Under the pieces are notes generated by a model, which did not search any database, had not been told where the DNA came from, and saw only the letters and a program-made list of their open reading frames with translations. A DNA stretch of 64,000 nucleotides, taken from the sequence record AP017925.1, one strand, 5' to 3'. Made by a program: the position numbers and the translations under genes. Below are positions 9,600 to 26,321 of this stretch, in pieces. How positions within the stretch are numbered: position 1 is the first letter of the stretch; each line of letters begins with the position of its first letter.

Positions 9600-12092
9600 A
9601 TGAAAATCCTCGAACTCGAACTCGATCTCTACAAGAGGTTGACGAAGGTGGCGCACATCCGTCACTTCAAGCTGACATTGAAAGAAATCGTGCAGTTGAT
9701 CTTGGGGACAAATGGTTCGGGCAAAAGCTCTATTCTCTACGAACTGTCGCCTCTCCCAGCTAACCACAAGGCTTACCATAAAGGTGGTAAGAAGCGTGTC
9801 CTGATTGCTCATCAGAACAAGATGTACGAACTCATCTCTGATTTTGCAAACGGGCAAGACCACTACTTTTATGTTGATGGTGAAAACCTGAACACAGGTC
9901 GCACCGTCACCATTCAAAAGGAACTGGTCAAAGAGCACTTCGGTATCACGTTTGAGACTCATGAGCTGCTGCTGGGTTACGAGCAGTTCTCCAAGATGTC
10001 TCCGGCACGTCGTCGTGAACTCTTTACGATGCTGTGTGTGGTGGATTACACCTATGCCATCAAGCTGTACCAGAAAATCCAAGTTGCGATGCGCGACGAT
10101 GTCGGTACGCTGAAGAACCTCAAGAAGCGCCTGGTCACGGAAACAGCGAATGCGCTGAAAGACGAAGAGATCACTGGTCTGCGTGTGCGCCTAGCTGAGC
10201 TGAATCGCGAATCGCAAGCAATGTACATGCTGCGTAACGCTAATGCTCAGACCACCTTCGATGCGCGCACGGTAGCTGAAGCCGCCAAGAAGACTATCGA
10301 TGACCTGTTGCAGAAGTTTCGCTCGGTGCGCTCGATTCTGCGCGATAAGTGTTGGATCACGCCAGACGAATATCAGGAAGACATCGACAGTCTGCGCGCT
10401 GAACTGCATGGTATCGAAGGTGTCTATGCTCGTGCGTCGGAAGAGTTCATCAAGGCTTCTTCCGAGGTTGAGCAGGTTTCTGGGCTCGAAGCAGAAGATG
10501 TCACCAAGCTGCAAGACGAAATCATCGCTTCGAACAAAAAAGCACAGAGCTTGCTGGAGACGCGTAAACGGCCTCTGGAGGGCTTTAAGCCTTTGGCAGC
10601 CTCGCAGTCTATGGAACTGGTCTACGAGTCGTTATACAGCGTTCTAACCGAGCTGCCGGCCGATCCTGAGGGACAAATGTCGTCCCAAGCATTGAGCGAG
10701 GTGTCAGAGCGCTTGCGCTTGGTCGAAATGTCGATCAGTGCCAACCGCGAGAAGCTGTCTGGTCTCGAACATCGGGAAAAACATCTGGTCGATCTGGCGA
10801 GTTCGGAGGACATCAATTGTCCAAAGTGCGAACACTCATTCAAGATGGGTTACTCGGTTGGGGAGCACGAATCGATCAAGACGCGTATCGCGGCAGGGCG
10901 CAATCACATCGAAGCACTAGGCAAAGAAGCTGCTGCTTTGAAGGAACAGCAAGAGCGGCTTAGCAACTACGCCAGTCTTTATAAGGAATACGTGCGCATC
11001 ACTCGTAACTCGCCAGAACTGCAACCGTTGTGGGATCTGATCGTCGAGGAAGACGCTCTGCGTCGTTCGCCTCAGCATGCTCTGACGCTGATCGAACTGG
11101 TACGCAGCGATCTGCGTATCGAGATGCAGGTAAATGCGATCTATGAAAAGATTGCGACCGACGATCACCGACTGAAACTCGCACAGTACGCTCAGTCCGA
11201 AGCCATCAAGACCAAGAAGCAACGTTTGGAACAGTTGGAACAGGAAATCGGTCGTCTGTCGAAGCAGAAGGTCTGGGTACAGGGTCGTCTAAGCGATCTG
11301 GTTCGCACTCAGCAGCAGATCAAGCACATGTACGAGGTCGGCGACCGGATGGCAAAGGCCAAGGAAGAGTTCACCAAAGCTTCCTACGCAATTATCGATG
11401 CTGTCAAGAATGAGATCATCGATGAAGCGCTAGCTGAGACTCATCGCGAGATTGCTACGCTGTCGACGCGTATCCACTCGATCGACCAACACGAGACACT
11501 GATCAATGATCTGAAACAGCAGATCCAAAATCACGAGAAATCAGAAAAGGCTTACAAGGCCTTGGCTGACGCTCTGTCTCCGACTGATGGTCTGATCGCT
11601 GAAGGGATGCTGGGCTTCATTCGCAACTACGTGGCGCGGATGAACGCACTAATCGCTAAGGTGTGGACGTACAAAATGGAAGTGCATGACTGCTCGACCG
11701 AGGACGATTCCGCGGAACTGAACTACAAGTTCCCAGTGACAATCGGTAACGATCCAGAACCAGTGCCTGATGTTGCTGATAGCTCATCTGGTCAAGAGGA
11801 AATGCTGAACCTAGCATTCCGCGTCGTGGCCGCGCAGTGTCTCGGTCTGGATAAAGGTCCGCTGCCATTGGATGAGTTTGGTAAGACCTTCGATGAAAGC
11901 CATCGCGAAGCTGCGACCAACGTCGTGCGTCAGCTGATTGAACAACTGAGCTTCTCGCAGTTGTTTATGATCTCGCACTACGAATCGAGCTACGGAGCAT
12001 TCTACAATGCTCAGATGTCAGTCATCGATAAGCGCAATATCACTGTACCAGTTAACCGCCGGTATAACGAGTTCACTGAACTAGCAGCATAA
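9600..12092 (+). CDS. sbcC: SbcC/Rad50-like SMC ATPase
   Basis: Walker A GTNGSGKS, zinc hook CPKC, signature SSGQ, LDEFGKTFD, ISH loop, long coiled coils. Confidence 0.92.
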   Translation: MKILELELDLYKRLTKVAHIRHFKLTLKEIVQLILGTNGSGKSSILYELSPLPANHKAYHKGGKKRVLIAHQNKMYELISDFANGQDHYFYVDGENLNTGRTVTIQKELVKEHFGITFETHELLLGYEQFSKMSPARRRELFTMLCVVDYTYAIKLYQKIQVAMRDDVGTLKNLKKRLVTETANALKDEEITGLRVRLAELNRESQAMYMLRNANAQTTFDARTVAEAAKKTIDDLLQKFRSVRSILRDKCWITPDEYQEDIDSLRAELHGIEGVYARASEEFIKASSEVEQVSGLEAEDVTKLQDEIIASNKKAQSLLETRKRPLEGFKPLAASQSMELVYESLYSVLTELPADPEGQMSSQALSEVSERLRLVEMSISANREKLSGLEHREKHLVDLASSEDINCPKCEHSFKMGYSVGEHESIKTRIAAGRNHIEALGKEAAALKEQQERLSNYASLYKEYVRITRNSPELQPLWDLIVEEDALRRSPQHALTLIELVRSDLRIEMQVNAIYEKIATDDHRLKLAQYAQSEAIKTKKQRLEQLEQEIGRLSKQKVWVQGRLSDLVRTQQQIKHMYEVGDRMAKAKEEFTKASYAIIDAVKNEIIDEALAETHREIATLSTRIHSIDQHETLINDLKQQIQNHEKSEKAYKALADALSPTDGLIAEGMLGFIRNYVARMNALIAKVWTYKMEVHDCSTEDDSAELNYKFPVTIGNDPEPVPDVADSSSGQEEMLNLAFRVVAAQCLGLDKGPLPLDEFGKTFDESHREAATNVVRQLIEQLSFSQLFMISHYESSYGAFYNAQMSVIDKRNITVPVNRRYNEFTELAA

Positions 12093-12128
12093 AAGGCCAG
12101 GAGGGGAAACCCTCCTGGCTCTTATGCC
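12087..12128. terminator. Hairpin terminator, identical 33-bp copy 2 (12096-12128)
   Basis: Same GCCAGGAGGGGAAACCCTCCTGGCTCTTATGCC as 8506-8538, preceded by GCATAA. Confidence 0.85.
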
Positions 12129-12133
12129 GTTAT

Positions 12134-12688
12134 TTAGACAGCAGGTGCTGCGTACTCATTGAAACCATTGATGTCAGGATTGCCAATCAATGGCCCGCCT
12201 TCCAACCATTCGGTGTTTGGCTTGAAGGTTGTTCCGTTGATCCAGAGCAGGGACTCCGGATGGGCTTGCAGCCTGAGACCCTTGTAGACATCGTCCAGCG
12301 TCAGGTACTCGTAGTCGATTATGTCATCTGCCGCAATCGGATATGGCAAGATTCTATTAATCTGCTCCAGAACGTCCGAGATCTTGAACGGCAGGTGCGT
12401 TGGCGAGACGTGGTGCAGATCACTGTTGCTGACGTGGTTGAGAATGCATCGACGGCGATACAGGAAGCCTGAGCCTTTTACCCAGTAACGATCGTCATAT
12501 TGCTGATCAACCTGACAAGGGATAAACGTATTGGGGTCGGTATCAAGATCCTTTCGTGGGTCGACCTCTTGCGGTTTTCCGAACTTGACCTTCTCCAGCG
12601 GGATAACTTGCCCTGTCGCCTCAAAGATCAAATACAGTAAAACTTGTTCACGACTCTTACCGACGTCGTGAGCGTCGATAACTACCAT
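12134..12688 (-). CDS. Hypothetical protein, possibly tail-associated
   Basis: 184-aa ORF co-oriented with the adjacent structural gene. Confidence 0.55.
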   Translation of the reverse strand: MVVIDAHDVGKSREQVLLYLIFEATGQVIPLEKVKFGKPQEVDPRKDLDTDPNTFIPCQVDQQYDDRYWVKGSGFLYRRRCILNHVSNSDLHHVSPTHLPFKISDVLEQINRILPYPIAADDIIDYEYLTLDDVYKGLRLQAHPESLLWINGTTFKPNTEWLEGGPLIGNPDINGFNEYAAPAV

Positions 12689-13965: not shown

Positions 13966-14161
13966 GAGAAAACTCCGTAAGAGTGCGTTTTTCCGCTTTT
14001 TATGCGGTTTAAAATGGCTCAAATAATGTGATCTACTATTAGGCTAAGTAGTATTTTTATACGACCAATGCCCTCCGTTCCCACGGCGGAAGGAGGCGGT
14101 GGTCCGCGTGGACGTCTTGGCCGACAAGTATTCCGAGACATCATCAAAGGACGATTGTTCA

Positions 14162-15766
14162 ATGGCTACCGCTTACCAGTATCCGTTCGATCCCAGCGGC
14201 ACTTCGTCTGCCAACCGGATCTTGAACGAGCAGCATGTCATCACCGCTGCAAACTTTCGGGATTACCACTACGTAATCCCGAACTTTGCCCCTTTCTTTG
14301 AGGGCGACTTCGACATCAAAATGCAGTTTCCTGATGGCTCGATTCGTCCTCTGACGCAAGGCGTCGACTTCTACTTCTCGAACCAGTTCTTGGACGCTTC
14401 GCGTGCCTGTGCGAAGCCTGTCTATGGTTCGATCTCGTTCCTTGACACCGATACCGCCGGTATCCTGTCGATCAACTACAACACTGTTGGTGGCGAGTGG
14501 AACATCTCGCCGACAGAAATCTCGCGTATCTTGGCCGAAGAGCTGCGCAACCCCCGTATTACGACCTGGGAACAAATCACGTATTTACCGGAACGTTTCC
14601 CGGTAGTCGATCACGCGTGGGATCTGATCGACATGGTGGGTATGTCTCCGGTTGTGGCTGCCATCGAAGCACTGCGCGACGCGGTTGTGACGAAGAACGG
14701 TGGTAACTTCACCGATCACATCAACAACTACTCGAACCCGCACAACACCACGGCGGCGCAAGTAGGGTTGGGCAATCTGTTCAACTATCCGATTGCTACG
14801 ACGGCTGATGCCCAGGCTGGCACGAGTAACTCGTTCTACATGACACCCGCGCGTGTCAAGGACGAAATCATGGCATTCGCTACGCCGCTGTCGCACTTGA
14901 CGGATTACACCAATCCGCACCAAGTGACAAAGACCCAGGTGGGGCTGAGCAATGTGGCGAACTTCGCAGTTTCGACCACGGCAGAAGCTCAAGCAGGTGC
15001 TGTTGATACGTCTTACATGACGCCGCTGAAGACAGCACAAGCCATCACGCAGCAGGCCGGTTCAGCGCTCGCAGCTCATGTTGCGAACCAGCAGAACCCG
15101 CACAACGTGACGAAAGATCAGGTTGGCTTGTTCAACGTCCAGAACTATCCGATCGCTACGCAACAGCAAGCGATGGCTGGTACGGACAACGCCTCGTACA
15201 TGACGCCGCTGCGCACAGCACAGCTGGTAGCTCAGATCTCTTCAGTGGCGCTACAGAACCACTTGAATGACTTTACCAACCCTCACCAAGTGACGGCCGG
15301 TCAGGTGGGTCTTGGTAATGTGCAGAACTACGGTATCGCTACTCAGGCTGATGCACAAGCCGGCGTGAGCAATACGCTGTACATGACGCCGGGTCGTGTC
15401 GCTGATGCCATCAATGCACTGGCTACGCCGCATGCTCACTTGCTGGATATGAACAATCCGCACCAAGTGACCGCGGCTCAAGTCGGCGCATACACGACTA
15501 CTCAGACGGATACGCTGTTGGGTGGTTACGTGCGGCTGACCGATCAGTGGGTAGCGGGTGAAACCAAAGCTGCCTTCATTGCAGAAGTGCTGCAGGGTAC
15601 GGCGAACAATGCTTCGATGGTTTACGGTTTCACGGAAGCCCAACTGGCCGCCGATCTCGAAACCAATTACTTCGATAACGCTTACGCCACCATTGCTGCA
15701 TTCAATGCATTGGCCCAGCGCGTGACCGACATCGAAACGGCCCTCAACAGCATCACCGTTGTGTAA
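14162..15766 (+). CDS. Tail fibre protein with ~60-aa NPH..QVGLGNV.NY repeats
   Basis: N-terminal YPFDPSG..N.I.NE.H motif typical of phiKZ-like fibres; four full repeats and one partial; RBS AAAGGA. Confidence 0.8.
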   Translation: MATAYQYPFDPSGTSSANRILNEQHVITAANFRDYHYVIPNFAPFFEGDFDIKMQFPDGSIRPLTQGVDFYFSNQFLDASRACAKPVYGSISFLDTDTAGILSINYNTVGGEWNISPTEISRILAEELRNPRITTWEQITYLPERFPVVDHAWDLIDMVGMSPVVAAIEALRDAVVTKNGGNFTDHINNYSNPHNTTAAQVGLGNLFNYPIATTADAQAGTSNSFYMTPARVKDEIMAFATPLSHLTDYTNPHQVTKTQVGLSNVANFAVSTTAEAQAGAVDTSYMTPLKTAQAITQQAGSALAAHVANQQNPHNVTKDQVGLFNVQNYPIATQQQAMAGTDNASYMTPLRTAQLVAQISSVALQNHLNDFTNPHQVTAGQVGLGNVQNYGIATQADAQAGVSNTLYMTPGRVADAINALATPHAHLLDMNNPHQVTAAQVGAYTTTQTDTLLGGYVRLTDQWVAGETKAAFIAEVLQGTANNASMVYGFTEAQLAADLETNYFDNAYATIAAFNALAQRVTDIETALNSITVV

Positions 15767-15782
15767 CCAACCCATTTAAGGG

Positions 15783-15802
15783 CGAGGCGGGAGACCGCCT
15801 CG
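15783..15802 (+). terminator. GNRA-capped hairpin between the tail-fibre genes (terminator or processing site)
   Basis: CGAGGCGG-GAGA-CCGCCTCG followed by TTT. Confidence 0.45.
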
Positions 15803-15818
15803 TTTGAGCGAACAAGTC

Positions 15819-17096
15819 ATGACTATTCCGATCTATCGCTATCCCTTGGATGGCACCGGCACCAGCCCGGATAACCTGGTGGTTGGAGAAGAACACCAGC
15901 TCTCCAACCGAGCAATTCGTTGCGTAGCGCCGACCTACGGTGGCTTCTACGCTGAATCCGCAGTGGTGACGGACTTCAACACTGGCGTACCGCTGGTGCG
16001 CGGTGTTGACTACTACTTTGGTGAGCTGTTCGAGTTCCCCACTGGTCGTTACGGTAAGGAAATCTTCGGCCTGATCGTTATCACCAAGCCGAACGTTGCT
16101 GCCGTTTCGATCAATTACCAAGCACTGGGTGGTGATTACTCCTATTCCATGGACGCAATCATCGCCATGATCGACAACCTGAATCTGGACACGCGTCCGG
16201 TGGAATGGGGTGCGATCATTGGTCGTCCGGCGCTGTTCGATCCGGCAACGCACTGGCACGATGCTGGTGACATCTACGGCTTCGAATACGTAGTGAGCGC
16301 GCTGATCGATCTGCGCAACGCCATCCTGACGGGTGACGTGGCCAGCCACGATGAGATCTATCGCTACATCGATCGCTGGGCAGCTCAGCAGAGCGCGGCC
16401 ATCCAAGCAGTTTCCGATGCACTGCACACGCACATCGTCGACTACACCAATCCGCACCAAACCACGAAGGCACAGGTAGGGTTGGGACTGGTGTCGAACT
16501 TTGCGACAGCGCTGCAAGCTGACATGAATACTGGTACGGCGAACAACCTGTTCGTGACGCCAGATATCGTTGCCGCGTACGTGACTCAGCAGGCAGTGAA
16601 TCCGCTGCTTGCTCACATTGCCGACAAGGGTAACCCGCACCAGACTACCGCAGCACAAGTGGGACTGGGTAATGTCCAGAACTATGGTGTTGCTTCCCAG
16701 CCGGACATGAATGCCGGTACGCGTGACGACGTCTATCTGACGCCGCTGAAGGTCGCGACCTATGTGACAAACGTCGCGGTTAACCCGATGAATGCGCACA
16801 TTGCCAATACCAACAATCCGCATGCCGTGACACAGGCACAAGTTGGGTTGGGTAGTGTTGCGAACTATCCGGTCGCTACTCAGGCTGAAGCGCAAGCTGG
16901 AACGGCTAACAACCGCTACATGACTCCCTGGCTCGTAAACCAAGAAGTCATGCAGATGCTCAACAACGGTGCATTCGACGGTCGCTATATGCGGTATGGC
17001 ACCGCCACTGATGGTTCGACCTGGGTTAGCGCTGGTATCGCCTACGTGTTCGTATCGGGAGCATGGCGACAGTTCTGGCCGCCTGTGTGGCAGTAA
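15819..17096 (+). CDS. Tail fibre protein 2 with three NPH..QVGLG repeats and a short C-terminus
   Basis: N-terminal YPLDGTG..N...E.H motif paralogous to fibre 1; ends VSGAWRQFWPPVWQ. TTG at 15804 is an alternative start. Confidence 0.8.
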   Translation: MTIPIYRYPLDGTGTSPDNLVVGEEHQLSNRAIRCVAPTYGGFYAESAVVTDFNTGVPLVRGVDYYFGELFEFPTGRYGKEIFGLIVITKPNVAAVSINYQALGGDYSYSMDAIIAMIDNLNLDTRPVEWGAIIGRPALFDPATHWHDAGDIYGFEYVVSALIDLRNAILTGDVASHDEIYRYIDRWAAQQSAAIQAVSDALHTHIVDYTNPHQTTKAQVGLGLVSNFATALQADMNTGTANNLFVTPDIVAAYVTQQAVNPLLAHIADKGNPHQTTAAQVGLGNVQNYGVASQPDMNAGTRDDVYLTPLKVATYVTNVAVNPMNAHIANTNNPHAVTQAQVGLGSVANYPVATQAEAQAGTANNRYMTPWLVNQEVMQMLNNGAFDGRYMRYGTATDGSTWVSAGIAYVFVSGAWRQFWPPVWQ

Positions 17097-17104
17097 GAGA
17101 TGTG

Positions 17105-17143
17105 AAAACCACTCCGCCCAAAAGGTGGAGTGGTTTTTATGTC
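17105..17143 (+). terminator. Hairpin terminator after tail fibre 2
   Basis: AAAACCACTCC/GGAGTGGTTTT stem followed by TATGTC. Confidence 0.7.
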
Positions 17144-17171
17144 TGGTGTTATTTGCTAAAAGGAATTTATC

Positions 17172-17549
17172 GTGGCCACCACCTCCTCTACAACCACTGA
17201 TGTGCAAGGGTATGACATCAATACTCTCCGCAACACAATTAACAGTGTGCGGGCTCGTATTGCTGCTGGTCAACCCATCAGTGCCAACCAAATCGCTGAC
17301 CTTGCTTGGGTGTACAACACTTGGATTCAGCATACCCACAACTACTACGACTATTACTGGATCGCTTACGGTAATACGTCTCCCTATGGCACCACTGCTG
17401 TATGGAAAACTTCTGGCAACGTTGGTGTAGGGTATTTCTCACCACCTGGGGCTGGACAAACTGTTCAAGCTGCTCATGTGAATGGCTTAGCGGGTCTGGT
17501 CAATGCGATCCGATCCCATACCCACTATTCGCCGGACGGCAGTTACTAA
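17172..17549 (+). CDS. 125-aa protein with two GQ-x19-HTH-x3-D repeats (fibre-tip or precursor-like)
   Basis: GTG start after AAGGA; repeats at aa 33-60 and 95-122; Tyr/Trp-rich. Confidence 0.75.
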   Translation: MATTSSTTTDVQGYDINTLRNTINSVRARIAAGQPISANQIADLAWVYNTWIQHTHNYYDYYWIAYGNTSPYGTTAVWKTSGNVGVGYFSPPGAGQTVQAAHVNGLAGLVNAIRSHTHYSPDGSY

Positions 17550-17632
17550 ACATTCCGTTAGGTAAAAAAGCAAGTGCGTTTTTACCTATCATTCGATTTT
17601 TATAGTAATCCATTTCGAGGACGAATCCACCA

Positions 17633-17830
17633 ATGTCCAATTATCTCTCCACTGTAACAACGGCTGCGGCGCCAGCTAACACTGTGGGGCAAGGCCAAGC
17701 GGTACAACCAGCCACGATGAACCAAATGGCTGCTGTACTGGATTCATTGCTGAGCCACACGCACGTCTTTTATGACAACTACGGCAGCAACTGCAATTGT
17801 AACTGCGCCTGCACCCGAGGATCTCTGTAA
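17633..17830 (+). CDS. 65-aa candidate precursor peptide ending in CNCNCAC
   Basis: RBS GAGGA; third copy of the GQ-x19-HTH-x3-D repeat, then CxCxCxC; stop overlaps the next start (TAATG). Confidence 0.85.
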   Translation: MSNYLSTVTTAAAPANTVGQGQAVQPATMNQMAAVLDSLLSHTHVFYDNYGSNCNCNCACTRGSL

Positions 17831-18717
17831 TGAAAACTGTCTTTATCAAAAGCGGCGGCTACTACGAAACGCCAGGTGTCGCTGTCTCCGGCGCTATCAA
17901 CGACGCCTTCGACTTCAACGTGAGTCAGCATTGCCGTTCGAATGCGCTGTTCATGCTCGACTATGTCAGTCGCGAATACCGCCTCAGCCTTACCGTTGCC
18001 TCTGGTGACATGAAAGATGCGTTCGCGCGTCTCGACATGGATCTGATCACCAAGGCCGCGGAAGAGCATGGCTTCTCTTATGTCGGCCTGGTGGCTGACG
18101 AAAAGGCGATGATGGCTCGCCCGGATGAATTCCTGCGCGACTTGTCCGTCGTGACCGTCTGCAAGGAAACCGGCAAGTTCCTCGATGCCAAGTCCGGCAC
18201 CGCTCTGACCGGCAACAACATCACACCGGTGATCTACTGCGTGAAGATGGCTGACAGCACGTACGCCATGATCCTGAGCCAGATGGCCAACGTGATGCCG
18301 AGCATGGTCGACAATCCGAAGGTGGGTCGTGACGACATGAACGTCATCGTGGTCAATGACGGCGATGCCATGCGTAGTCAGTTCGTGGACGTCAGCTTCC
18401 ACGGCGCTACCAAGCATTTCCGCAACAACGACCTCGTTACTGGTTTCGCAGTGTTTGCTTGGCCGAATGCTCTGATTGAAGTTAATATCTTCAAGGACAC
18501 GCCGCTCGCCGCTGAGTTCAAGAAGAACTTCGAACTGGAAGTCGACAGCAGCTTTGATGCCAAGATCGTCGACGGCAAGGTCGTTATCCAGATGCCGCCT
18601 TCGTGTCGCACTGGCTATCTGTCGATCAAGCTGAAGACCACACCGCTGTACGAAGACGTCTCGTCGCGCGAGATCAAGGAAATGCTTTCGTTCGACTTCA
18701 TCGTGACGGTTGTTTAA
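17830..18717 (+). CDS. Uncharacterised 295-aa protein of the radical SAM cluster
   Basis: Translationally coupled to the peptide gene; no family recognised. Confidence 0.8.
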   Translation: MKTVFIKSGGYYETPGVAVSGAINDAFDFNVSQHCRSNALFMLDYVSREYRLSLTVASGDMKDAFARLDMDLITKAAEEHGFSYVGLVADEKAMMARPDEFLRDLSVVTVCKETGKFLDAKSGTALTGNNITPVIYCVKMADSTYAMILSQMANVMPSMVDNPKVGRDDMNVIVVNDGDAMRSQFVDVSFHGATKHFRNNDLVTGFAVFAWPNALIEVNIFKDTPLAAEFKKNFELEVDSSFDAKIVDGKVVIQMPPSCRTGYLSIKLKTTPLYEDVSSREIKEMLSFDFIVTVV

Positions 18718-18786
18718 CCACTCCTATTCGAAGCCGACAGATGACTTGTTCATCTGTCGGTTTTATGCTCCCATCAGGACACCATC

Positions 18787-20400
18787 ATGCAAGAACAAGT
18801 TATCAAAATCCATCGCAAGAAAGAACCCATCGACTTCAAGAAACCCGGGGAGCGTATCAAAACCATCGCCGAGGTCAAGGACATTCTGTTCGCTGAACTG
18901 AAAGTCCTGAACGTGATCCTGACCAACGCCTGCAATCTCTCGTGTAGCTACTGCTTCGAACAGCACAAACAGGACTACGGCAAGTTCACCCAAGAACAAC
19001 TGAAGCAAGTGTATGACTTCCTGCTGAACGCCAACACTCAGCCGCATCGCCACTTCCAGTTCTTTGGTGGTGAGCCGTTGGCGCAGAAGAAGAAGATCCT
19101 CGACTTCTGTCGCGACCACAAGGACGAACTCTCGGCCAACAAGGAGCAGGTGCGTGTGTCGATCGTGACCAACGCGCTGCTCCTGACACCGGAATTCATC
19201 GAGGAATACTGCAGCTACGATTTTACGTCGCTGGTCATTTCTTTGGACACGGATGATGCCGAGTCGAACCGTCGCGAACTGACGCAAGAGAACATCGACT
19301 ACATCTTCGAGATGATCAAGCTGTTGCCTGACTCGATGATGCGCGATGCTCACCACGTCTCGATTCGTTGCACCATCAACGAAGAGAGCGTACCGCACCT
19401 CGATCGCTTCATGGAGCGTCTGTATGCGTCCGGCGTGCGCAATTTCGTGATCCATCCGCTGATCCTCGCTAAGGATCAAGGCGCCATTGAATGGCAGCCG
19501 GGTATGTGGGAGCGGATGTACCATTCACTGCATCAAGCCATGCATCGCTGGGACGACTTCAAGATCACCTGGGCCGAAGGCGTGGGTGTGAAAGGCGAGT
19601 CCAACTGCATGGTCGGTTCGGACATGATTGCGATGGACGCCTCGGGTGACTTCAGCGGTTGCTACTTCCTGACCAACCTGAAAGAAACCTACGGCAACAC
19701 GATGCTCGGCAATCTGTTCCGCGACGAGATCTACATCGATCGTTACGTCGAGTTCCAGCAAGCCTATGCCAAGTCGCTGGAACACGAACAGTGCCAGTCG
19801 TGCCACCTCAAGAACTTCTGCTACCAGTGCCCGGCTGGTAATGCAGCTACTGGTGGTTCGCTGTTCCGTCCGGACTCGATGTGCAAGCGCATTGTGGAAC
19901 TGTTCCTCACTCTGCGTCAGGACTTCAACCGTAAGGCTTTGCTCCAACAGTTCAAGGAGCTGGAAGAAGCTGTTGTCCAGCAAGGTCCGATTGCTCAGTC
20001 TCGTGCAGTGCTGCATTGCATCTACCGCGAGTTCACTGGTGAGATTCAGGACAACGCCATCATTGACGCTTATGAAGAACTGCCGGCACCGCACACGCTG
20101 CTCTTCATGTTCAAGCAAATGCTGGAAGGCGGTTTGACTAGCATTCCGCCGCTCGACGTGTGGGTGTCTGGACTACTGCGCCGCAACCCTCGTCCGGAGG
20201 AAAGCATCGATCCGTACGAGTTCTACCTGTTCTTGTGCAAGCTACGTGGTATCCCGATCGATTTCAAATACACTCCGAATGGTTCTGTTCAAGAGCAGAA
20301 CTACTTTATCACCCTGACTCACTTGCTGATTTTCGATGAAAGTCGTTATCTCAGCAAATACGATCCGGAACACAGCCGGTCTCGTATTCTCGACCTGTAA
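18787..20400 (+). CDS. Radical SAM/SPASM maturase 1 with C-terminal extension
   Basis: CNLSCSYC, FFGGEP, SPASM cysteines CMVG..SGC and CQSCHLKNFCYQCP..C. Confidence 0.93.
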   Translation: MQEQVIKIHRKKEPIDFKKPGERIKTIAEVKDILFAELKVLNVILTNACNLSCSYCFEQHKQDYGKFTQEQLKQVYDFLLNANTQPHRHFQFFGGEPLAQKKKILDFCRDHKDELSANKEQVRVSIVTNALLLTPEFIEEYCSYDFTSLVISLDTDDAESNRRELTQENIDYIFEMIKLLPDSMMRDAHHVSIRCTINEESVPHLDRFMERLYASGVRNFVIHPLILAKDQGAIEWQPGMWERMYHSLHQAMHRWDDFKITWAEGVGVKGESNCMVGSDMIAMDASGDFSGCYFLTNLKETYGNTMLGNLFRDEIYIDRYVEFQQAYAKSLEHEQCQSCHLKNFCYQCPAGNAATGGSLFRPDSMCKRIVELFLTLRQDFNRKALLQQFKELEEAVVQQGPIAQSRAVLHCIYREFTGEIQDNAIIDAYEELPAPHTLLFMFKQMLEGGLTSIPPLDVWVSGLLRRNPRPEESIDPYEFYLFLCKLRGIPIDFKYTPNGSVQEQNYFITLTHLLIFDESRYLSKYDPEHSRSRILDL

Positions 20401-20413
20401 GGTAACTTAACCC

Positions 20414-21496
20414 ATGAACTACGATAACATCCAGGACGTCTCGATCTATGTGGGTCCTGCGTGCAACTTCAACTGCACGTATTGTGATCGCGCCTACGTA
20501 AACAACGTAGGTGTGGATTCTGCTGAATGCGATCCGGCCTTGGTCGACTTCGTAGTTGATGTGGTGCTGCACTCCGAGCGTCCGATGGTTTCCTTCCACG
20601 GTGGGGAACCATTTGTTTACATCAAGACCATGGAGAAGATCATCGAGGCCGTGCTCGAACGCGTACCAGATTTCAAGGAACGCGGCGCGATCTTCTTCAT
20701 CCAGACCAATGGCTCGCTGATTACCCGTCAGCGAGCTTTCTTCGAGAAATACAAAGAGGTGCTCTACGTGAGCATCTCTTACGACTTCAAGTACCAGGGC
20801 GATAACCGCACTGCGTACGACATTGACTCAACCCTGCAACTCTTGAATGATCTGGGGATTGGGACGAACCTGCAATACGTGATTCCGACCTACGACAAGA
20901 ACGCTTGCGATCACGCAGCGTACTCGGAAGTCATGCGGTTGTTCTCCAAGTTTAAGCTGGGGCAACTGAACCTGATCCTGTTGCGTCACATTCGGCAGGA
21001 AGATAAATTCGAAACAGTGATCGCGGATGAGAGCATCGACCTAAAGGGATTCTTCCTCGGCTTCATGCGCTTCGTCCAGTTGCTGTACGTCTCAGGTATC
21101 AATGTCCACATCGACGGTCATGCCAACAAGATCGATAAGAACTATTACAACAACCATAAGCAAATGGTGCTCGCTCCAAATGGCCTGATCGTACCGGAGT
21201 ACCAGTTCATCGAGTATGATGATTACGATTTCGCTATCGGTCGCTGGAAGCCTTACGTGGAGATCTCTCGTGATCAGATGCCGGAGAAGGCCGCCAAGAA
21301 GATTCGCAAAGAGTGCCAGACTTGTCCGATGGCGGACATCTGTGGTTTGCGTTATCACTACGCAATGTTCGATATGGACCCGCCAACTCCGCAACGGTGC
21401 AAGGAGTTCTACTCTCTGAACCTGATCGCGATCAAGCACCTGTACAAACTGAAAGAGCAACCCACCCTTCTCCACCATCTGGGAGTTCAGCAATGA
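20414..21496 (+). CDS. Radical SAM enzyme 2 with partial SPASM domain
   Basis: CNFNCTYC, SFHGGEP, QTNGSL; C-terminal CQTCPMADIC..C. Confidence 0.9.
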   Translation: MNYDNIQDVSIYVGPACNFNCTYCDRAYVNNVGVDSAECDPALVDFVVDVVLHSERPMVSFHGGEPFVYIKTMEKIIEAVLERVPDFKERGAIFFIQTNGSLITRQRAFFEKYKEVLYVSISYDFKYQGDNRTAYDIDSTLQLLNDLGIGTNLQYVIPTYDKNACDHAAYSEVMRLFSKFKLGQLNLILLRHIRQEDKFETVIADESIDLKGFFLGFMRFVQLLYVSGINVHIDGHANKIDKNYYNNHKQMVLAPNGLIVPEYQFIEYDDYDFAIGRWKPYVEISRDQMPEKAAKKIRKECQTCPMADICGLRYHYAMFDMDPPTPQRCKEFYSLNLIAIKHLYKLKEQPTLLHHLGVQQ

Positions 21497-22641
21497 GTCG
21501 CGCTATCACGATCGAGAATCCGAAAGAGCACTTCATCCGTTACGACGGACTGCTCAACGTCCAGTATGACGTGACGTTTTCGATCTTCAAGAAGTACACC
21601 TGTCAAGCCGGGTGCAAGATCTGTTATATCAAGGATGACTTCCTGCCTAACGAGCAGTTCAAGAAGTATGTCCCGATAGCATCACACGTCAACACGCAGA
21701 GCTACGGCGACCGCCTGCTAGAATTCCTGTCATACTTTCAGATGGCAGCAATCATCGACGACCTGTACTTTGTGCGGGAAGAACATCCGGAGCTGTACAA
21801 GTTCTATCAGGAGTATAGCGAGGCCTTCTGGCTGAGTTCCATGACGGACAACGCAGTGTTCCGTCACCTGCCGATTATTGAGGATGACCTTCGTGTCGTC
21901 GGTCTACGGGAGATCTCGCTCTCCGAGGAATTCTTGTATAAAGTCAACCAAACGAAGTTCTTTAACGCACTGGATAAAATTCAGAGGCGCGCTAAGATAT
22001 TGAAAATAAAGGTAATACTGTCGGGTCTCCCTGGCATCGCGATTCGTGGCAACGATTTGATGCTCTGGTGTCAGAACAATCAAGTGCTCCTAGAGAAGCA
22101 ATACGAGCACGGTGTTGAGCCGAATGGCCGCAGCTTCCTGTCTCAGTTGCCGAACACGCGTTACAGCGATCGCAGCCAGGAAACGCACTTCACTGAAGAG
22201 ATCACCTACAGTGAGAATTCTGGTGAGATGCTGTACCCAATTCACTCTGAGTCGATCTTCTTGCAGTACGATGACTTCTACTCGGAGCTGAAGTCTGCCA
22301 CGCGTGAAGACCGCAGTGCGCCGTTTGCCAAGCTGGATGATTTTGTCCAGAGTCCGCAAGGCTTCTTGGCTAAGGTGCTGGAAGGTAAGCTGACGGATTA
22401 CCGCAAGTATGCTTCGTGGATGCAGAACAAAGATCACGACTACTTCCGTTACTTTGACTATGTGGCGAATAACGTGGTAGTCAATCATGACTTCAACTTC
22501 ATCCCGCGTATCGCTCTGCGGCCAGATAGCGTGTACTATCACAAGCTGATGGAACACACGAAGCTGGTGGATACCCAATACGGGCTCGTGGATTCTGCCG
22601 CGAGCAAGGTCGTTCCAATTTACTCTTTCAGAGAACAATGA
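21493..22641 (+). CDS. Divergent radical SAM-like protein 3
   Basis: ATGA overlap with the previous gene; CQAGCKIC (CxxxCxxC) but no GGEP motif and no auxiliary Cys cluster. Confidence 0.7.
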   Translation: MSRAITIENPKEHFIRYDGLLNVQYDVTFSIFKKYTCQAGCKICYIKDDFLPNEQFKKYVPIASHVNTQSYGDRLLEFLSYFQMAAIIDDLYFVREEHPELYKFYQEYSEAFWLSSMTDNAVFRHLPIIEDDLRVVGLREISLSEEFLYKVNQTKFFNALDKIQRRAKILKIKVILSGLPGIAIRGNDLMLWCQNNQVLLEKQYEHGVEPNGRSFLSQLPNTRYSDRSQETHFTEEITYSENSGEMLYPIHSESIFLQYDDFYSELKSATREDRSAPFAKLDDFVQSPQGFLAKVLEGKLTDYRKYASWMQNKDHDYFRYFDYVANNVVVNHDFNFIPRIALRPDSVYYHKLMEHTKLVDTQYGLVDSAASKVVPIYSFREQ

Positions 22642-23897
22642 GCATAAGCACATTCCGAATCGAGAAGTCGGGTGAAGTGTTTGGTTACGACAACACACTG
22701 AACTCGATCCTCGATGCAAACAACCAGCCTGTGGGTCGAGCTTCGTCTCTCCTGGCTCAGGCTCCGTCGTTCGAGAAATCGAATACTCCTACCACCATCA
22801 AGGTACTGCTCGGGCACGCCTGTAACTACAGCTGCAGCTACTGCGTACAGAAGGACATCGGTAATCCGGCTGAACGTCCGAAGAACATCATGACCAAGGA
22901 GTTGATCAAGAAGATGCGCGCGCATCTCGATCTCTCCAACGTCACGCGGATTGAACTGTGGGGCGGCGAGACGCTGCTCTACTGGCCGGATATCGTTGAG
23001 ATCATCTCAGCACTGGATCGGGAAGGCATTACGTGGTACATCCCGACCAACGGTACGATCCTGCGGATGAAGCACGCTGAGTTCTTCCGCCAGATGAAAG
23101 GCGAGATGACCATCGGCATCAGTCACGACGGTCCGGGTCACGTATCGCTGCGTGGTCCGGAGTTCCTGCATCGCAAGATCGATGAGTTGGGTGCGCTGCA
23201 AGACGCCAAGGTACGGTTCAGCTTCAACGCTGTGATCAGTACCACGAACTACGATCTGTTTGCCATCGATGACTACTTCCGCTTCTTCCTGCTCAAGGCA
23301 GACCTCGATCACGTAGGGCTGGGCTTCGAGCTGGGGCGGACGTATGAGACGGGTGCTTGCGCTACCGAGTCGCACGTGATCACACTGGAGCAGATCCCGC
23401 ACTATCGGTCGATTCTGAAAGCGTATCTCAAGCACCATCTCGATGCGTTCAAGAAAGGTCAAGCGCCGGAAGACATCGATGCCGATACTCGACTGTTCAA
23501 CAGCCTGTTCCATTTCAGCAATGGTGTGATTCCGTACGCGAAGTCGCTAGTTCAGCAAAGCCCCATTCGCTATTACAGCAACTGCGGCACTGATGATCCG
23601 AACCTGATCACGCTGGACATGAATGGCGCTATCCGCGTTTGTCAGAACACGGACGAGAGCTACATCTACGGCAACGTTGCTAATATCGGCGCTGCTAAGA
23701 TGCAGAAGGTCGATTACAGCAAGAACGACTTCTGCAAGGACTGCTCGGTTTTGCGGCTGTGCAATCGTAGCTGCCCGATCGAACTGCCATACGAAACCTT
23801 TTTGACCAACCACCATATCGAGAACGCTCACTACAGCGAGATACAACTCTCGGCGTTTGAGTTGTTGTTCGATAGCCCTATCACCAAAGTGAACTGA
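22638..23897 (+). CDS. Radical SAM/SPASM maturase 4
   Basis: CNYSCSYC, LWGGET, PTNGT; SPASM-like CGTD..RVC and CKDCSVLRLCNRSCP; ATGA overlap. Confidence 0.92.
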   Translation: MSISTFRIEKSGEVFGYDNTLNSILDANNQPVGRASSLLAQAPSFEKSNTPTTIKVLLGHACNYSCSYCVQKDIGNPAERPKNIMTKELIKKMRAHLDLSNVTRIELWGGETLLYWPDIVEIISALDREGITWYIPTNGTILRMKHAEFFRQMKGEMTIGISHDGPGHVSLRGPEFLHRKIDELGALQDAKVRFSFNAVISTTNYDLFAIDDYFRFFLLKADLDHVGLGFELGRTYETGACATESHVITLEQIPHYRSILKAYLKHHLDAFKKGQAPEDIDADTRLFNSLFHFSNGVIPYAKSLVQQSPIRYYSNCGTDDPNLITLDMNGAIRVCQNTDESYIYGNVANIGAAKMQKVDYSKNDFCKDCSVLRLCNRSCPIELPYETFLTNHHIENAHYSEIQLSAFELLFDSPITKVN

Positions 23898-23905
23898 GAA
23901 AACTC

Positions 23906-24742
23906 ATGTCCGACATTCTTGACCGTTTTGTCCTGCCCGAAACTGCAGCCCAAGTTACCGAGCTGCGCGCCCAGCTGGACGCGATGAAGAACCATCGTGT
24001 CTTCGGTATGGTGAAAACCATCGACGACCTGCAAACCTTCATGTCGCTCCACGTCTACGCCGTGTGGGACTTCATGACGCTGGCCAAGCGCCTGCAGTGC
24101 GAGTACACCGGCATCAAGTTCCCGTGGGTGCCGCCGCGCCTCCCCAAGGTCGCCCGTCTGATCAACGAGATCATCCTGGCCGAAGAGTCCGACGACAACG
24201 GTGAGGGCGGTACTTGCAGCCACTTCGAACTGTACGCCATGGCCATGCAAGAAATCGGTGACATCGACATGGAGTCGCTCGAAGCATTCGTAACGAACCT
24301 TCGTTACGGTATCCCGCCGGTGGAATCTGCTAACCGTGCACTGATCAAGGCCGATCCGGAGTTCCGTGCGACTGTCACCAACTACATCGGCGATACTACT
24401 GCCGTGGCTCGCACTGGCCTGCCGGAAGAAGTGCTGGCCTACTTCGTCTTTGGTCGTGAAGATTCGATCCCGGCGATGTTCAGCAACCTGCTTGAGCAGA
24501 TGGGTGATCTGGCTGCCAAAGCGACGACCTTCACGTACTACTTGAAGCGCCATATCCAACTCGACGGTGAAGACCACAGTGTCAAAGCTGCTGAGATGCT
24601 GTCGCTCGAACTGGAAGGCAATCCGATTCGCACGCGCACCGCACTGATCGCTGGTATCAATGCCGCCAAGTCCCGCATTGCTTTGTGGGATGCGATTGCT
24701 GCGAAGCTGGAAGCAACTCAAGCAGCGACGGCAACTGCCTAA
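23906..24742 (+). CDS. DUF3050-family heme-oxygenase-like (PqqC/CADD-fold) diiron oxidase
   Basis: Motifs HVYAVWDFM, PWVPP, INEIILAEESD, SHFELY, FGRED, YLKRHIQLDGEDH. Confidence 0.85.
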   Translation: MSDILDRFVLPETAAQVTELRAQLDAMKNHRVFGMVKTIDDLQTFMSLHVYAVWDFMTLAKRLQCEYTGIKFPWVPPRLPKVARLINEIILAEESDDNGEGGTCSHFELYAMAMQEIGDIDMESLEAFVTNLRYGIPPVESANRALIKADPEFRATVTNYIGDTTAVARTGLPEEVLAYFVFGREDSIPAMFSNLLEQMGDLAAKATTFTYYLKRHIQLDGEDHSVKAAEMLSLELEGNPIRTRTALIAGINAAKSRIALWDAIAAKLEATQAATATA

Positions 24743-24754
24743 TCGACTCACGAC

Positions 24755-24800
24755 GGCATAAAGGAGAGTAGAGGCCAGACGGCCTCTACTCTTTATGTCG
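24755..24800. terminator. Bidirectional terminator closing the radical SAM operon
   Basis: GGCATAAAG..AGAGTAGAGGCC-AGAC-GGCCTCTACTCT..TTATGTCG. Confidence 0.85.
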
Positions 24801-25440
24801 CTATTTTGTCATACTCCGCTAGGTCGATACGGAAGCCATCTTCCAATGCGCCATAAGCAACGCGCATGAACAATTGGAAAGTGATGTGATCGAGCACTTC
24901 CACTTTGAACAACGGCTCGACTATCTTCTTGATGCGTTCCGGTAAGCGATAATCCATAACGTCTTCGAAAGCTGAGTTCAGAATGCGCCGGCGCACCGGA
25001 TCAGCAAACTTCCGATAGCCATCAATCACCTTACAATAGCGGATGAAGGGCTGTACTACAGAAGGAGCCACCCGTCGGAAGAGATGTGTATTGTAGATCT
25101 CTTCAAAGTAGGAAAGTTCATTCTCCGTAAATAGCTGCCGGGGGAAGGTGATACGGCGCCAATACAGTAGGCACTTGTTGTGTCCCATGACATGGAAGTA
25201 GTGCGGCAGAATATCGTACGGGTCCCGGATGATCTGCTCAAAAGCTTCTTGCGGGATAATCGTGCAGAGTTCTGGAACGTCGTAGCTCTCCAACTCTGCT
25301 TCCGGTACAGCGATCAGCTTGTATCCATCCAAGCCAGAGAGAAAGAAGTCATGGTCATCAATCAAGACTGCTTCCACGAGTTCAGGGAGCTGCTTGAGAT
25401 ACTCCACAGCGATGGCGTTCAATTCTTCGATAGTTTTCAT
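24793..25440 (-). CDS. Hypothetical protein (215 aa)
   Basis: Start trimmed to MKTIEEL; converges on the terminator. Confidence 0.65.
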   Translation of the reverse strand: MKTIEELNAIAVEYLKQLPELVEAVLIDDHDFFLSGLDGYKLIAVPEAELESYDVPELCTIIPQEAFEQIIRDPYDILPHYFHVMGHNKCLLYWRRITFPRQLFTENELSYFEEIYNTHLFRRVAPSVVQPFIRYCKVIDGYRKFADPVRRRILNSAFEDVMDYRLPERIKKIVEPLFKVEVLDHITFQLFMRVAYGALEDGFRIDLAEYDKIAT

Positions 25441-26219: not shown

Positions 26220-26321
26220 AGTGAGGAATAGGTGCATGGAGTAAGACATAAAAATAGGCACCGGCATAAAAAGCCTACTAAGGCACCCGAAAGCACCCTA
26301 GTAGGCGTTCACGTCTACCCA

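Follow-up and report, generated by a model that had tools for sequence, protein, structure and literature searches.

A phage gene module in which small proteins sharing a His-x-His repeat accompany four radical-SAM proteins, and its possible role in a cross-linked host-recognition part

We found that three His-x-His repeats in the Ralstonia jumbo phage RP12 mark an apparently undescribed gene set in which a small two-repeat protein and a tiny cysteine-rich peptide are encoded together with four radical-SAM proteins, usually beside tail-fibre genes and almost only on phage or metagenome contigs. The DNA analysed was a 64-kb stretch of the RP12 genome (AP017925.1), called the window below. A sequence-only reading of the window had proposed that repeats of identical spacing, described as GQ-x19-HTH-x3-D, link two small proteins, which would form a separately encoded, metal-bound trimeric fibre tip. 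The repeats are real and lie exactly where that reading had placed them. By contrast, its interpretation is only partly supported, as described below.

We first translated the two reading frames. ORF074 (17172..17549, + strand; 125 aa, GTG start; phrog_31780, unknown function) contains G33/H54/H56/D60 and G95/H116/H118/D122, and a 65-aa ORF (17633..17830, + strand), which is not annotated in the RP12 and RP31 GenBank records, contains G21/H42/H44/D48. The unit, a Gly, 20 residues, and then H-x-H-x3-D, has the same spacing in all three copies, which are unit 1 (17268..17351, +; G33 to D60), unit 2 (17454..17537, +; G95 to D122, three residues before the C-terminus), and unit 3 in the peptide (17693..17776, +; G21 to D48). 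The secondary matches noted in the sequence-only reading also hold, with I36/V98/V24 at +3 from the Gly, L44-A45, L106-A107, and M32-A33 at +11/+12, and N49/N111/D37 at +16. We next tested whether the matches could be due to chance by searching every stop-to-stop segment of at least 30 aa in all six frames of the window with a profile of the unit built only from other phages, with RP12 left out. Units 1, 2, and 3 scored 49.2, 30.7, and 47.2 bits, respectively, which is far more than chance, and the next best hit was 5.2 bits. No fibre ORF of the window carries the unit. Moreover, a profile-profile comparison of the two protein families aligned unit 2 of ORF074 with the unit of the peptide at 93.5% probability (E 2.3e-7).

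The unit is strongly conserved among relatives. In 128 two-unit proteins and 63 peptides, both His residues are at 100% in all three unit types, and the Asp at +6 from the first His is at 95-100%. The Gly at -21 is at 80, 55, and 78%, and I or V at -18 is at 94, 78, and 89% in unit 1, unit 2, and the peptide unit, respectively. By contrast, the Gln of the proposed GQ is not conserved, and the middle residue of H-x-H is free in the two-unit protein. Conservation of the HTH residues among homologues had been set beforehand as a test of the fibre-tip reading, and this test came out in its favour for the two His residues. Each unit type also has its own conserved residues. At -14 from the first His, D is at 62% in unit 1, residues are mixed in unit 2, and T is at 75% in the peptide; at -5, N is at 77% in unit 1 and 60% in unit 2, and K, D, or E occurs in the peptide. 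This pattern is what three distinct positions in one assembly would give. AF2 predicts a helix at residues 38-52 and a strand at 53-60 in unit 1, and a helix at residues 100-115 in unit 2. Thus, each unit is read as a Gly-capped amphipathic helix of about 15 residues that runs into a beta-strand, and the invariant residues all have the same parity, so that they would lie on one face of this predicted strand.

The peptide consists of a variable N-terminal part, unit 3, and a Cys/Asn tail ending in TRGSL. Relatives include P0003-P0006 and 64 distinct versions in loci; in an alignment of 17 diverse relatives, M32, L36, L39, H42, H44, D48, C54, C60, R62, and G63 are invariant, and C56 and C58 are at least 90% conserved. 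The alternating Cys core (C54, C56, C58, and C60; 17792..17812, +) is the likely radical-SAM target. In relatives, the residue between the Cys residues is mostly N, Q, E, or D at the two such columns tabulated, and A also occurs in single sequences.

Downstream of the peptide lies ORF075 (17830..18717, +; 295 aa), whose start overlaps the stop codon of the peptide and which gave no Pfam, NCBIfam, or PDB match; a homologue or a ≈300-aa ORF occupies the same slot in all loci inspected. Next are rS1 (ORF076; 18787..20400, +; 537 aa), a radical-SAM/SPASM enzyme matching PF04055, rS2 (ORF077; 20414..21496, +; 360 aa), a radical-SAM enzyme, ORF078 (21493..22641, +; 382 aa), a fourth radical-SAM-like protein that gave no Pfam or NCBIfam hit, and rS3 (ORF079; 22638..23897, +; 419 aa), a radical-SAM/SPASM enzyme. 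The CX3CX2C triad is conserved at 95-100% in all four proteins (in 19 relatives for ORF078), and the conserved auxiliary Cys residues number 7 in rS1, 4 in rS2 (C-terminal), 0 in ORF078, and 6 in rS3. An optional last member is ORF080 (23906..24742, +; 278 aa), a DUF3050/HamA heme-oxygenase-like protein (PF11251, E 2e-68). Of 41 loci with room for the enzymes, all 41 have the peptide beside the enzymes and rS1, 40 each have rS2, ORF078, and rS3, and 25 have the DUF3050 protein. Likewise, at least 53 of 55 loci with room upstream carry the two-unit gene; in 49 of these, by automated count, it ends within 300 nt of the peptide gene, and the rest were seen by inspection of individual loci. Thus, the repeat does tie the two small proteins to each other, as the sequence-only reading had proposed, and to the radical-SAM genes.

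We next examined the distribution of the module. It was found in about 64 distinct phage loci, and the searches returned 15 viral and 65 metagenome loci, including jumbo, T4-like, and other large phages from soil and sea. The two-unit protein forms 245 clusters at 50% identity, but appears only once among 185,579 prokaryotic species genomes, on a 25.6-kb MAG contig. Of 157 family representatives, 150 have exactly two H-x-H-x3-[D/N/E] motifs. In the first set of loci, the unit profile found two units in the protein and one in the adjacent peptide in nearly every lineage, although the second unit scored only weakly in loci L019, L026/L029, and L032. Two paralogous two-unit proteins with different inserts share one peptide in loci L009 and L046. 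Weak tblastn hits of both small proteins to ≈100-kb Acinetobacter phages initially looked like a shared relative; however, one hit lies on the strand opposite the annotated gene, neither locus has annotated radical-SAM genes nearby, and these hits were attributed to chance.

A single-chain version of the three units also occurs naturally. P0151, a 231-aa member of the family, equals a two-unit protein plus a peptide-like third unit without a Cys tail, and all three H-x-H-x3-D motifs are kept. No radical-SAM gene lies in the 10 kb upstream or the 2.8 kb downstream that its contig shows. AF2 with 132 sequences modelled units 1 and 2 of P0151 at pLDDT 84-94 and the unit-3 helix at about 74, with a pTM of 0.67, such that the third unit is modelled with only moderate confidence, and its linker is below pLDDT 50. 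A mean-field covariation analysis of 173 two-unit proteins, intended to show whether units 1 and 2 touch, returned top pairs that were alignment-gap artefacts and was discarded.

These results led us to a reading, to which we give a probability of only about 0.35, in which the three repeats are copies of one ancient structural unit that acts as a docking and assembly element. In this view, the two units of ORF074 and the single unit of the peptide would pack as a pseudo-threefold, 2 + 1 bundle in which the six His (and perhaps the three Asp) form a metal site. This packing would fix the peptide on ORF074 and present its Cys tail to the SPASM-type radical-SAM enzymes, which would install thioether-type cross-links and give a small, metal-bound, covalently stapled heterodimer. 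Our analysis establishes the repeat and its conservation, the gene set and its near restriction to phage-type contigs, the enzyme classes, the plasticity of the two-unit protein, and the genomic context, whereas the 2 + 1 packing, the clustering of the His residues, the metal, the cross-link chemistry, and any location on the virion or binding to a fibre are inferred. Four radical-SAM proteins are more than a handful of thioethers would seem to need, and other chemistry, possibly on the His, Tyr, or Asp residues themselves, is not excluded.

The placement of the matured complex as, most likely, a fibre-associated, surface-exposed binding knob rests on the plasticity of ORF074 and on genomic context. 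Whole domains are inserted between units 1 and 2 (Gly_rich_2, PF21722, and a beta-propeller) or appended after unit 2 (ILEI-like and Hint) in members of the family, which in this reading would require that the unit ends are close in space and that the insert is displayed. Within the RP12-like lineage, the enzymes keep their length at 50-84% identity, whereas the two-unit protein ranges from 125 to 386 aa, like the fibres. In RP12, the module follows fibre-like protein 1 (ORF072; 14162..15766, +; 534 aa), which is annotated as a virion structural protein and matches PHROG tail and tail-fibre families, and fibre-like protein 2 (ORF073; 15819..17096, +; 425 aa), which ends in WRQFWPPVWQ; both are neighbours and not part of the module. 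Fibre-like genes flank the module in RP12-like phages and many unrelated lineages, including T4-type distal fibres, and lie beside it in most lineages examined. However, in loci L036/L037, which represent one lineage, the module lies among primase, ribonucleotide-reductase, and thioredoxin genes instead of fibres, and the marine L049 group has a DNA ligase nearby. Moreover, a strong terminator-like hairpin (17099..17143, +) with a 20-pair stem and a folding energy of -32.8 kcal/mol (z = -7.9 against shuffles) separates fibre 2 from ORF074. A sigma-70 promoter scan gave no more sites than shuffled sequence. Published LC-MS/MS of RP31 virions (PMC5468394) did not list ORF70, the RP31 copy of ORF074, but this is weak evidence, because bands were cut from a gel, only 32 proteins were listed (Table S3), both fibres were also missing, and the 65-aa ORF was not in the annotated ORF set.

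The sequence-only reading had noted that fibre 2 ends abruptly with no obvious receptor-binding domain, and had inferred that the small proteins form a separately encoded trimeric tip that the radical-SAM cluster could tailor. In our fuller statement of this model, ORF074 and the peptide would each form homotrimers whose HxH motifs chelate Fe or Zn on the threefold axis, as in T4 gp37 and gp12 and P2 gpV, and would cap the C-terminus of fibre 2. Several findings are consistent with this model. HxH is invariant, HxH motifs from three chains bind iron along the T4 gp37 needle (PMC6957217; PMC11705849), the inserted domains are of the binding type, and the genes follow fibre 2 directly in RP12-like phages. 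The same type of C-terminal tail ends the fibre-like gene next to the module in at least 14 other lineages, and the related phage FLC1-1B, which lacks the module, has a fibre 2 that ends instead in a Peptidase_S74 chaperone domain. We first read this tail as a docking site specific to the module, but dropped this reading when the same tail was found in fibres of RSF1, RSL2, FLC6, FLC8, and others that lack the module; fibre 2 therefore does not need ORF074. Likewise, we found no homology to the named metal-binding proteins. Profiles of the unit and of the ORF074 family against PDB gave nothing below E = 1, and Foldseek searches with a 9-sequence model (pLDDT 65.6) and with the better P0151 model found no match with E ≤ 0.001 in PDB, the only such match in BFVD being the RP12 protein itself, so that T4 gp37, gp12, and P2 gpV did not come back. 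PDB searches with ORF075 and its family and with ORF078 also found nothing. Pfam, NCBIfam, and PHROG scans of ORF074, the peptide, and ORF075 were uninformative, and neither small-protein family matches any Pfam or NCBIfam family; among 132 two-unit proteins, only 3 touched "Phage tail fibre repeat", at E ≥ 0.048, which is at noise level. In addition, the unit is predicted to be a helix plus a strand and not a run of HxH strands, and the count of 2 + 1 units in two different chains and the three-unit P0151 chain fit one pseudo-trimer better than two homotrimers. We therefore consider the homotrimeric tip unlikely, although it remains a rival.

A second rival, somewhat less likely than our own reading and also doubtful, is a classical RiPP pathway, in which the unit is a shared leader or recognition sequence bound by the radical-SAM enzymes or by ORF075, both ORF074 and the peptide are substrates, and the useful product is a small modified peptide released at lysis that acts, for example, on competing bacteria, other phages, or the host. 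The position next to the fibres would then be just a cargo hot spot. A shared leader was also the alternative offered by the sequence-only reading. It fits the peptide, which has the usual RiPP layout of a variable N-terminal part, a conserved helix, and a Cys-rich C-terminal core next to SPASM maturases. The radical-SAM domains start at residues 7-58, leaving no room in any of the enzymes for an N-terminal recognition domain, and a separate recognition partner would therefore be expected. The module moves as a block, can sit among replication genes, and has homing-endonuclease genes in or beside it in locus L034 and RSF1. By contrast, the leader reading does not fit unit 2 of ORF074, which ends a median of 4 residues before the C-terminus and leaves no core after it, and the region between the units can be a whole folded domain of 150-300 aa. 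The most conserved residues are two His and an Asp and not the hydrophobic face alone, none of the 17 peptides has a credible NCBIfam match to a precursor family (best E 0.043, for an unrelated family), and no protease or exporter is in the module. The system is also all but absent from bacterial genomes, where RiPP clusters normally live, and P0151 keeps three units with no Cys core and no radical-SAM gene in view.

A third possibility, which we consider very unlikely, is that the radical-SAM enzymes and the DUF3050 oxidase build cross-links and perhaps a residue-derived cofactor next to a His-bound metal, as with the cross-linked gamma subunit of quinohemoprotein amine dehydrogenase, to give the phage a small metalloenzyme or metal carrier instead of a structural part. 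rS1 also resembles the QhpD-type maturase family (E 1e-20), an oxidase-like DUF3050 protein is often present, and the invariant His, His, and Asp sit beside conserved Tyr residues in the peptide (Y at +8 in 98%). However, the family cut-off is not reached (73.8 bits against 453), no partner dehydrogenase-like genes are in the module, DUF3050 is optional, and this reading does not explain the plasticity of ORF074 or the fibre context.

Radical-SAM peptide maturation is known as a bacterial way of making natural products and a few enzyme subunits, whereas here a complete, conserved system of that kind occurs almost only on phage-type contigs. Literature searches on phage radical-SAM or RiPP systems, fibres, and SPASM found no paper describing the module; one paper notes only that some marine T4-like genomes hold up to 12 radical-SAM genes. 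If the product sits on the fibres, it would add a new chemical layer to how phages build host-recognition parts, and if it is a released peptide, it would be a new class of phage-made natural product. In either case, a function would be given to a block of about 8 kb that is annotated as hypothetical, and a gene missing from the RP12 and RP31 records is revealed. In its strongest form, which we regard as unlikely though not excluded, phages of many lineages would carry a dedicated four-enzyme workshop that staples the peptide onto, or beside, its two-unit partner, with the three units forming a pseudo-threefold His6 metal site and the hyper-stable knob displayed on the tail fibres as a receptor-binding part. 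To our knowledge, this would be the first case of radical-SAM post-translational cross-linking of a virion protein.

Four described systems are closest to the module. QhpC/QhpD provides a precedent for a SPASM enzyme that cross-links Cys to Asp/Glu side chains in a small protein that stays part of a larger complex, but the rS1 score is far below the QhpD cut-off, there are no dehydrogenase subunits, and the host here is a phage. The HxH metal sites of fibre needles and spikes (T4 gp37 and gp12, P2 gpV) resemble the module in an invariant H-x-H on a beta-strand (predicted here), a multiple of three copies, and a usual location beside fibre genes; they differ in that the module has one HxH per unit, preceded by a helix, in two different small chains and not in one homotrimeric fibre. 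Separately encoded fibre-tip adhesins, such as gp38 of T2/S16-type phages (the S16 adhesin work is cited in PMC6957217), are likewise small, highly variable proteins encoded next to the distal fibre gene, and some two-unit proteins carry a glycine-rich insert (PF21722). However, no homology to gp38 and no PDB, Pfam, or PHROG relative with a known function was detected, attachment of ORF074 to a fibre is only inferred, and gp38 proteins need no radical-SAM enzymes and have no partner peptide. Finally, thioether-forming radical-SAM/SPASM systems (SCIFF/CteB and PapB ranthipeptides) also encode a short precursor with a Cys-rich C-terminal core next to SPASM enzymes, and rS1 has its best family hit to PapB-type maturases and its best solved chain in 5wgg, the SCIFF maturase CteB. 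All scores are far below the curated family cut-offs, with the best at 125 bits against 340, and, in contrast to these systems, the phage module has four radical-SAM proteins instead of one and a second, larger protein that shares the "leader" of the precursor twice.

Bases 14000-25000 of the window are 100% identical to Ralstonia phage RP12, a 279,845-bp jumbo phage of the genus Ripduovirus, and to its sister RP31; window position equals record position minus 65,255. The repeats lie in RP12 ORF074 (17172-17549, 125 aa) and in a 65-aa, Cys-rich ORF (17633-17830, + strand), referred to below as the peptide, that is missing from the annotation of RP12 (AP017924, NC_041911) and RP31 (AP017925). 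The stop codon of the peptide gene overlaps the ATG of ORF075 (TAATG). No gene in this region is broken. The sequence-only reading had proposed that three units of identical register, each with a Gly followed by H-x-H-x3-D, link these two small proteins, and this observation was confirmed. The residues fall exactly at G33, H54, H56, and D60 (unit 1 of ORF074), at G95, H116, H118, and D122 (unit 2 of ORF074), and at G21, H42, H44, and D48 (peptide), and the secondary matches at +3, +11/+12, and +16 from the Gly also hold. To test whether this similarity is more than chance, we built a profile of the unit from other phages only and ran it against all stop-to-stop segments of at least 30 aa in six frames of the 64-kb window. 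The three places scored 49.2, 30.7, and 47.2 bits, respectively, compared to 5.2 bits for the next best hit. Moreover, profile-profile comparison of the two protein families aligned unit 2 of ORF074 with the unit of the peptide at 93.5% probability. Thus, the repeat is real, there are exactly three copies, and none lies in a fibre gene.

In RP12, ORF074 is preceded by two fibre-like proteins (14162-15766 and 15819-17096) that match PHROG tail and fibre families. A very stable hairpin (17099-17143, + strand; -32.8 kcal/mol, z = -7.9) followed by a U-rich stretch separates the second fibre gene from ORF074. A weaker AT-rich hairpin (17557-17589, + strand) sits between ORF074 and the peptide gene, where the 87-nt spacer folds at -16.3 kcal/mol (z = -3.0); the spacing between these two genes is not conserved in relatives. 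The peptide gene is followed by ORF075 (17830-18717, 295 aa), by ORF076, ORF077, ORF078, and ORF079 (18787-23897), and by a DUF3050/HamA heme-oxygenase-like protein (23906-24742). Pfam identifies ORF076 (rS1), ORF077 (rS2), and ORF079 (rS3) as radical-SAM proteins. By contrast, ORF078 has no Pfam hit, but its CX3CX2C triad is conserved in 95-100% of 19 relatives, and there are therefore four radical-SAM-type proteins. Conserved auxiliary Cys residues number 7 in rS1, 4 in rS2, and 6 in rS3, whereas ORF078 has none. The best named family for rS1 is the PapB-type ranthipeptide maturase, at 125 bits against a cut-off of 340, and its best solved chain is 5wgg, the SCIFF thioether maturase CteB. 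The module could be a classical RiPP pathway with a shared leader and a released product, which we regard as a possible but unlikely alternative to the reading given below. Two genes beyond the module, RP12 ORF082 (25605-26249, - strand) has no Pfam family and corresponds by ORF numbering (an offset of 4 inferred from the published ORF pairs) to RP31 ORF78, a 22.9-kDa protein of unknown function detected in RP31 virions.

We next asked how widely these genes occur. Among GenBank phages, only RP12 and RP31 carry ORF074, the peptide, ORF075, and close rS1 relatives. Public assemblies hold many more. Word-based protein searches returned one ORF074 relative and four peptides, all in the same gene order. 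Pattern scans with the peptide alignment returned 15 viral contigs, 65 metagenome contigs, and a single hit among 185,579 bacterial and archaeal species genomes, which lies on a 25.6-kb contig of a Bdellovibrio MAG. An exhaustive profile search of 1.84 billion representative proteins found 245 clusters of the two-unit protein (the ORF074 family) at E <= 0.001, most of them 120-140 aa long. Annotation of all loci (designated L below) with local profiles gave 64 distinct peptide versions. In 49 of 55 loci with room upstream, the two-unit gene ends within 300 nt of the peptide gene, and in four more (L028, L034, L041, and L060) it is present but was missed by our strict pattern or lies further away. 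Of 41 loci with at least 7.5 kb on one side, 41 have rS1, 40 each have rS2, ORF078, and rS3, and 25 have the DUF3050 protein. A ≈300-aa ORF075-like gene fills the same slot in all loci inspected; our profile recognizes it in 29 of the 41, and ORFs of 298-325 aa sit there in the others that were looked at. Several marine and other loci (L054, L055, L057, L064, L067, L087, and L089; L086 and L096) have two ORF075-like genes, either one on each side of the two small genes or two in tandem. In L034, from an RP12-like metagenomic phage, a GIY-YIG homing-endonuclease gene (11252-12208, - strand) is inserted on the opposite strand between the peptide and the ORF075-like gene. We conclude that this is a self-contained module of seven or eight genes.

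Residue conservation in the unit was determined over 128 two-unit proteins and 63 peptides, with positions counted from the first His and values given for unit 1, unit 2, and the peptide unit, respectively. Gly at -21 is present in 80%, 55%, and 78%; Ile or Val at -18 in 94%, 78%, and 89%; Ala at -16 in 84%, 64%, and 60%; and Leu, Ile, or Met at -10 in 90%, 75%, and 99%. His at 0 and +2 is present in 100% of all three, and Asp at +6 in 95%, 98%, and 100%. The middle residue of H-x-H is free in the two-unit protein (T, Y, N, S, K, R, V, and others), but is Thr in 98% of peptides. AF2 models place a helix over about -16 to -2 and a strand at the His motif. His, His, and Asp share parity, implying that they lie on one face of this predicted strand, and in the peptide the same parity continues through Y50 and the four Cys. 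Each unit type also has residues of its own, for example at -14, -5, and -3, and the three are old, specialized paralogues rather than interchangeable copies. Unit 2 ends a median of 4 residues before the C-terminus.

The two-unit protein is highly plastic outside the units. Of 157 family representatives (designated P below), 150 have exactly two motifs. The longer members fall into two classes. Some have a whole domain between the units, such as the glycine-rich domain PF21722 in P0021 and P0047 and a beta-propeller in P0048, whereas others have an extension after unit 2, which is ILEI-like in P0017 and contains Hint modules in P0066, P0071, and P0076. A long C-terminal extension ending in a Hint module (Hom_end_hint), seen in these three proteins and at L020 (8620-9978, + strand), hints at self-cleavage or ligation of the extension. 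In one viral contig (L019, 9950-10573, + strand), the peptide itself is 207 aa long, with about 135 residues inserted inside the Cys core. This insert starts with Cys and ends with Asn followed by Cys, like a mini-intein, but this likeness rests on reading the sequence only, as Pfam found no intein domain at E <= 0.01. Within the RP12-like lineage, the enzymes are 50-84% identical at constant length, whereas the two-unit protein is 125, 127, 128, 219, 222, 230, 300, or 386 aa long, with only the units alignable, a pattern that resembles that of the neighbouring fibres. Two loci (L009 and L046) have two paralogous two-unit genes with different inserts but one peptide gene. Finally, one protein (P0151, 231 aa; Logan SRR22388231) is a natural single chain consisting of a two-unit protein plus a peptide-like third unit with no Cys tail, in which all three H-x-H-x3-D motifs are kept. 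It lies among T4-type replication genes (gp32, UvsX-like, UvsW-like, and clamp loader), with no radical-SAM gene in the 10 kb upstream or the 2.8 kb downstream that the contig shows. An AF2 model of P0151 from 132 sequences has pLDDT 84-94 over units 1 and 2, about 74 over the unit-3 helix, and pTM 0.67.

We then examined the genomic context of the module. In RP12-like phages, it follows two fibre genes. In at least 14 lineages, many of them unrelated to RP12, the gene next to the module ends in the same kind of tail as RP12 fibre 2 (WRQFWPPVWQ in RP12), and these genes give weak PHROG tail-fibre hits. L031 and L060 have a T4-type distal long-tail-fibre gene as divergent neighbour, and L042, L090, L093, and L097 have fibre or baseplate-like neighbours. 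By contrast, L036/L037 place the module among primase, ribonucleotide-reductase, and thioredoxin genes, with the enzymes first, and the marine L049 group has a DNA ligase nearby. The fibre tail itself is not tied to the module, as RSF1, RSL2, RsoM3USA, FLC6, FLC8, and others have the tail but lack ORF074, the peptide, ORF075, and rS1. The claim that fibre 2 needs this separately encoded tip was therefore not supported. At the same place, Ralstonia phage RSF1 (L104, 5184-9398) has a different set, in which a fibre 2 with the same C-terminal tail is followed by a GIY-YIG nuclease, a cupin, a radical-SAM protein distantly like rS1-3, and a 186-aa protein ending in a three-fold Cys-His-Ser-Ser-type repeat. 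This is a second kind of radical-SAM plus Cys-tail pair at the same genomic place. The related jumbo phage FLC1-1B (L016, 11336-13015) lacks any such set, and its fibre 2 ends in a Peptidase_S74 intramolecular chaperone domain instead of the short Trp/Pro tail. The paper on RP12 and RP31 lists the enzymes only as "other genes", and its RP31 virion mass spectrometry, which covered 32 proteins from gel bands, contains neither ORF70 (the RP31 copy of ORF074) nor the two fibres ORF68 and ORF69. Full-text literature searches found no description of the module.

Any interpretation must account for the fixed 2 + 1 count of differentiated units in two adjacent genes, the invariant His residues and highly conserved Asp on one predicted strand face, the tolerance of whole domains between units 1 and 2, the natural three-unit single chain, and the obligate link to SPASM-type enzymes and a Cys/Asx tail. 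The simplest account is that the three units pack into one pseudo-threefold bundle with a His-lined metal site, which would dock the peptide on ORF074, after which the enzymes would cross-link the tail. The fibre-side context and the fibre-like plasticity of ORF074 make a surface-exposed, fibre-associated binding knob the most likely final role. We hold this reading tentatively, with a probability of about 0.35. The facts that it explains were established by the sequence analysis, whereas the packing, the metal, the chemistry, and the virion location are all inferred. A QhpC-like, cofactor-bearing subunit is a doubtful alternative.

The sequence-only reading had instead likened the small proteins to the metal-binding fibre and spike tips of T4 gp37 and gp12 and P2 gpV. 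Searches of PDB sequences with the unit profile, the ORF074 family, ORF075 and its family, and ORF078 returned nothing. Likewise, Foldseek searches of PDB and BFVD with two AF2 models returned only the RP12 protein itself, and the two-unit proteins and peptides matched no family in Pfam or NCBIfam. T4 gp37, gp12, and P2 gpV therefore did not come back as relatives, and the likeness is limited to the H-x-H motif, which in gp37 binds iron through His residues of three chains (PMC6957217; PMC11705849). A homotrimeric fibre tip is considered unlikely. Overall, the interpretation in the sequence-only reading was supported in part, in that the link between the proteins, the conservation of the His residues, and the fibre neighbourhood hold, whereas homology to gp37-type tips does not. 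Compared to known systems, the enzymes and the Cys-rich precursor are of a familiar type, but the near-exclusive occurrence on phage-type contigs, the presence of four radical-SAM proteins, the partner protein that repeats the unit of the precursor twice, the conserved H-x-H-x3-D with its invariant His residues, and the fibre association appear to be new.
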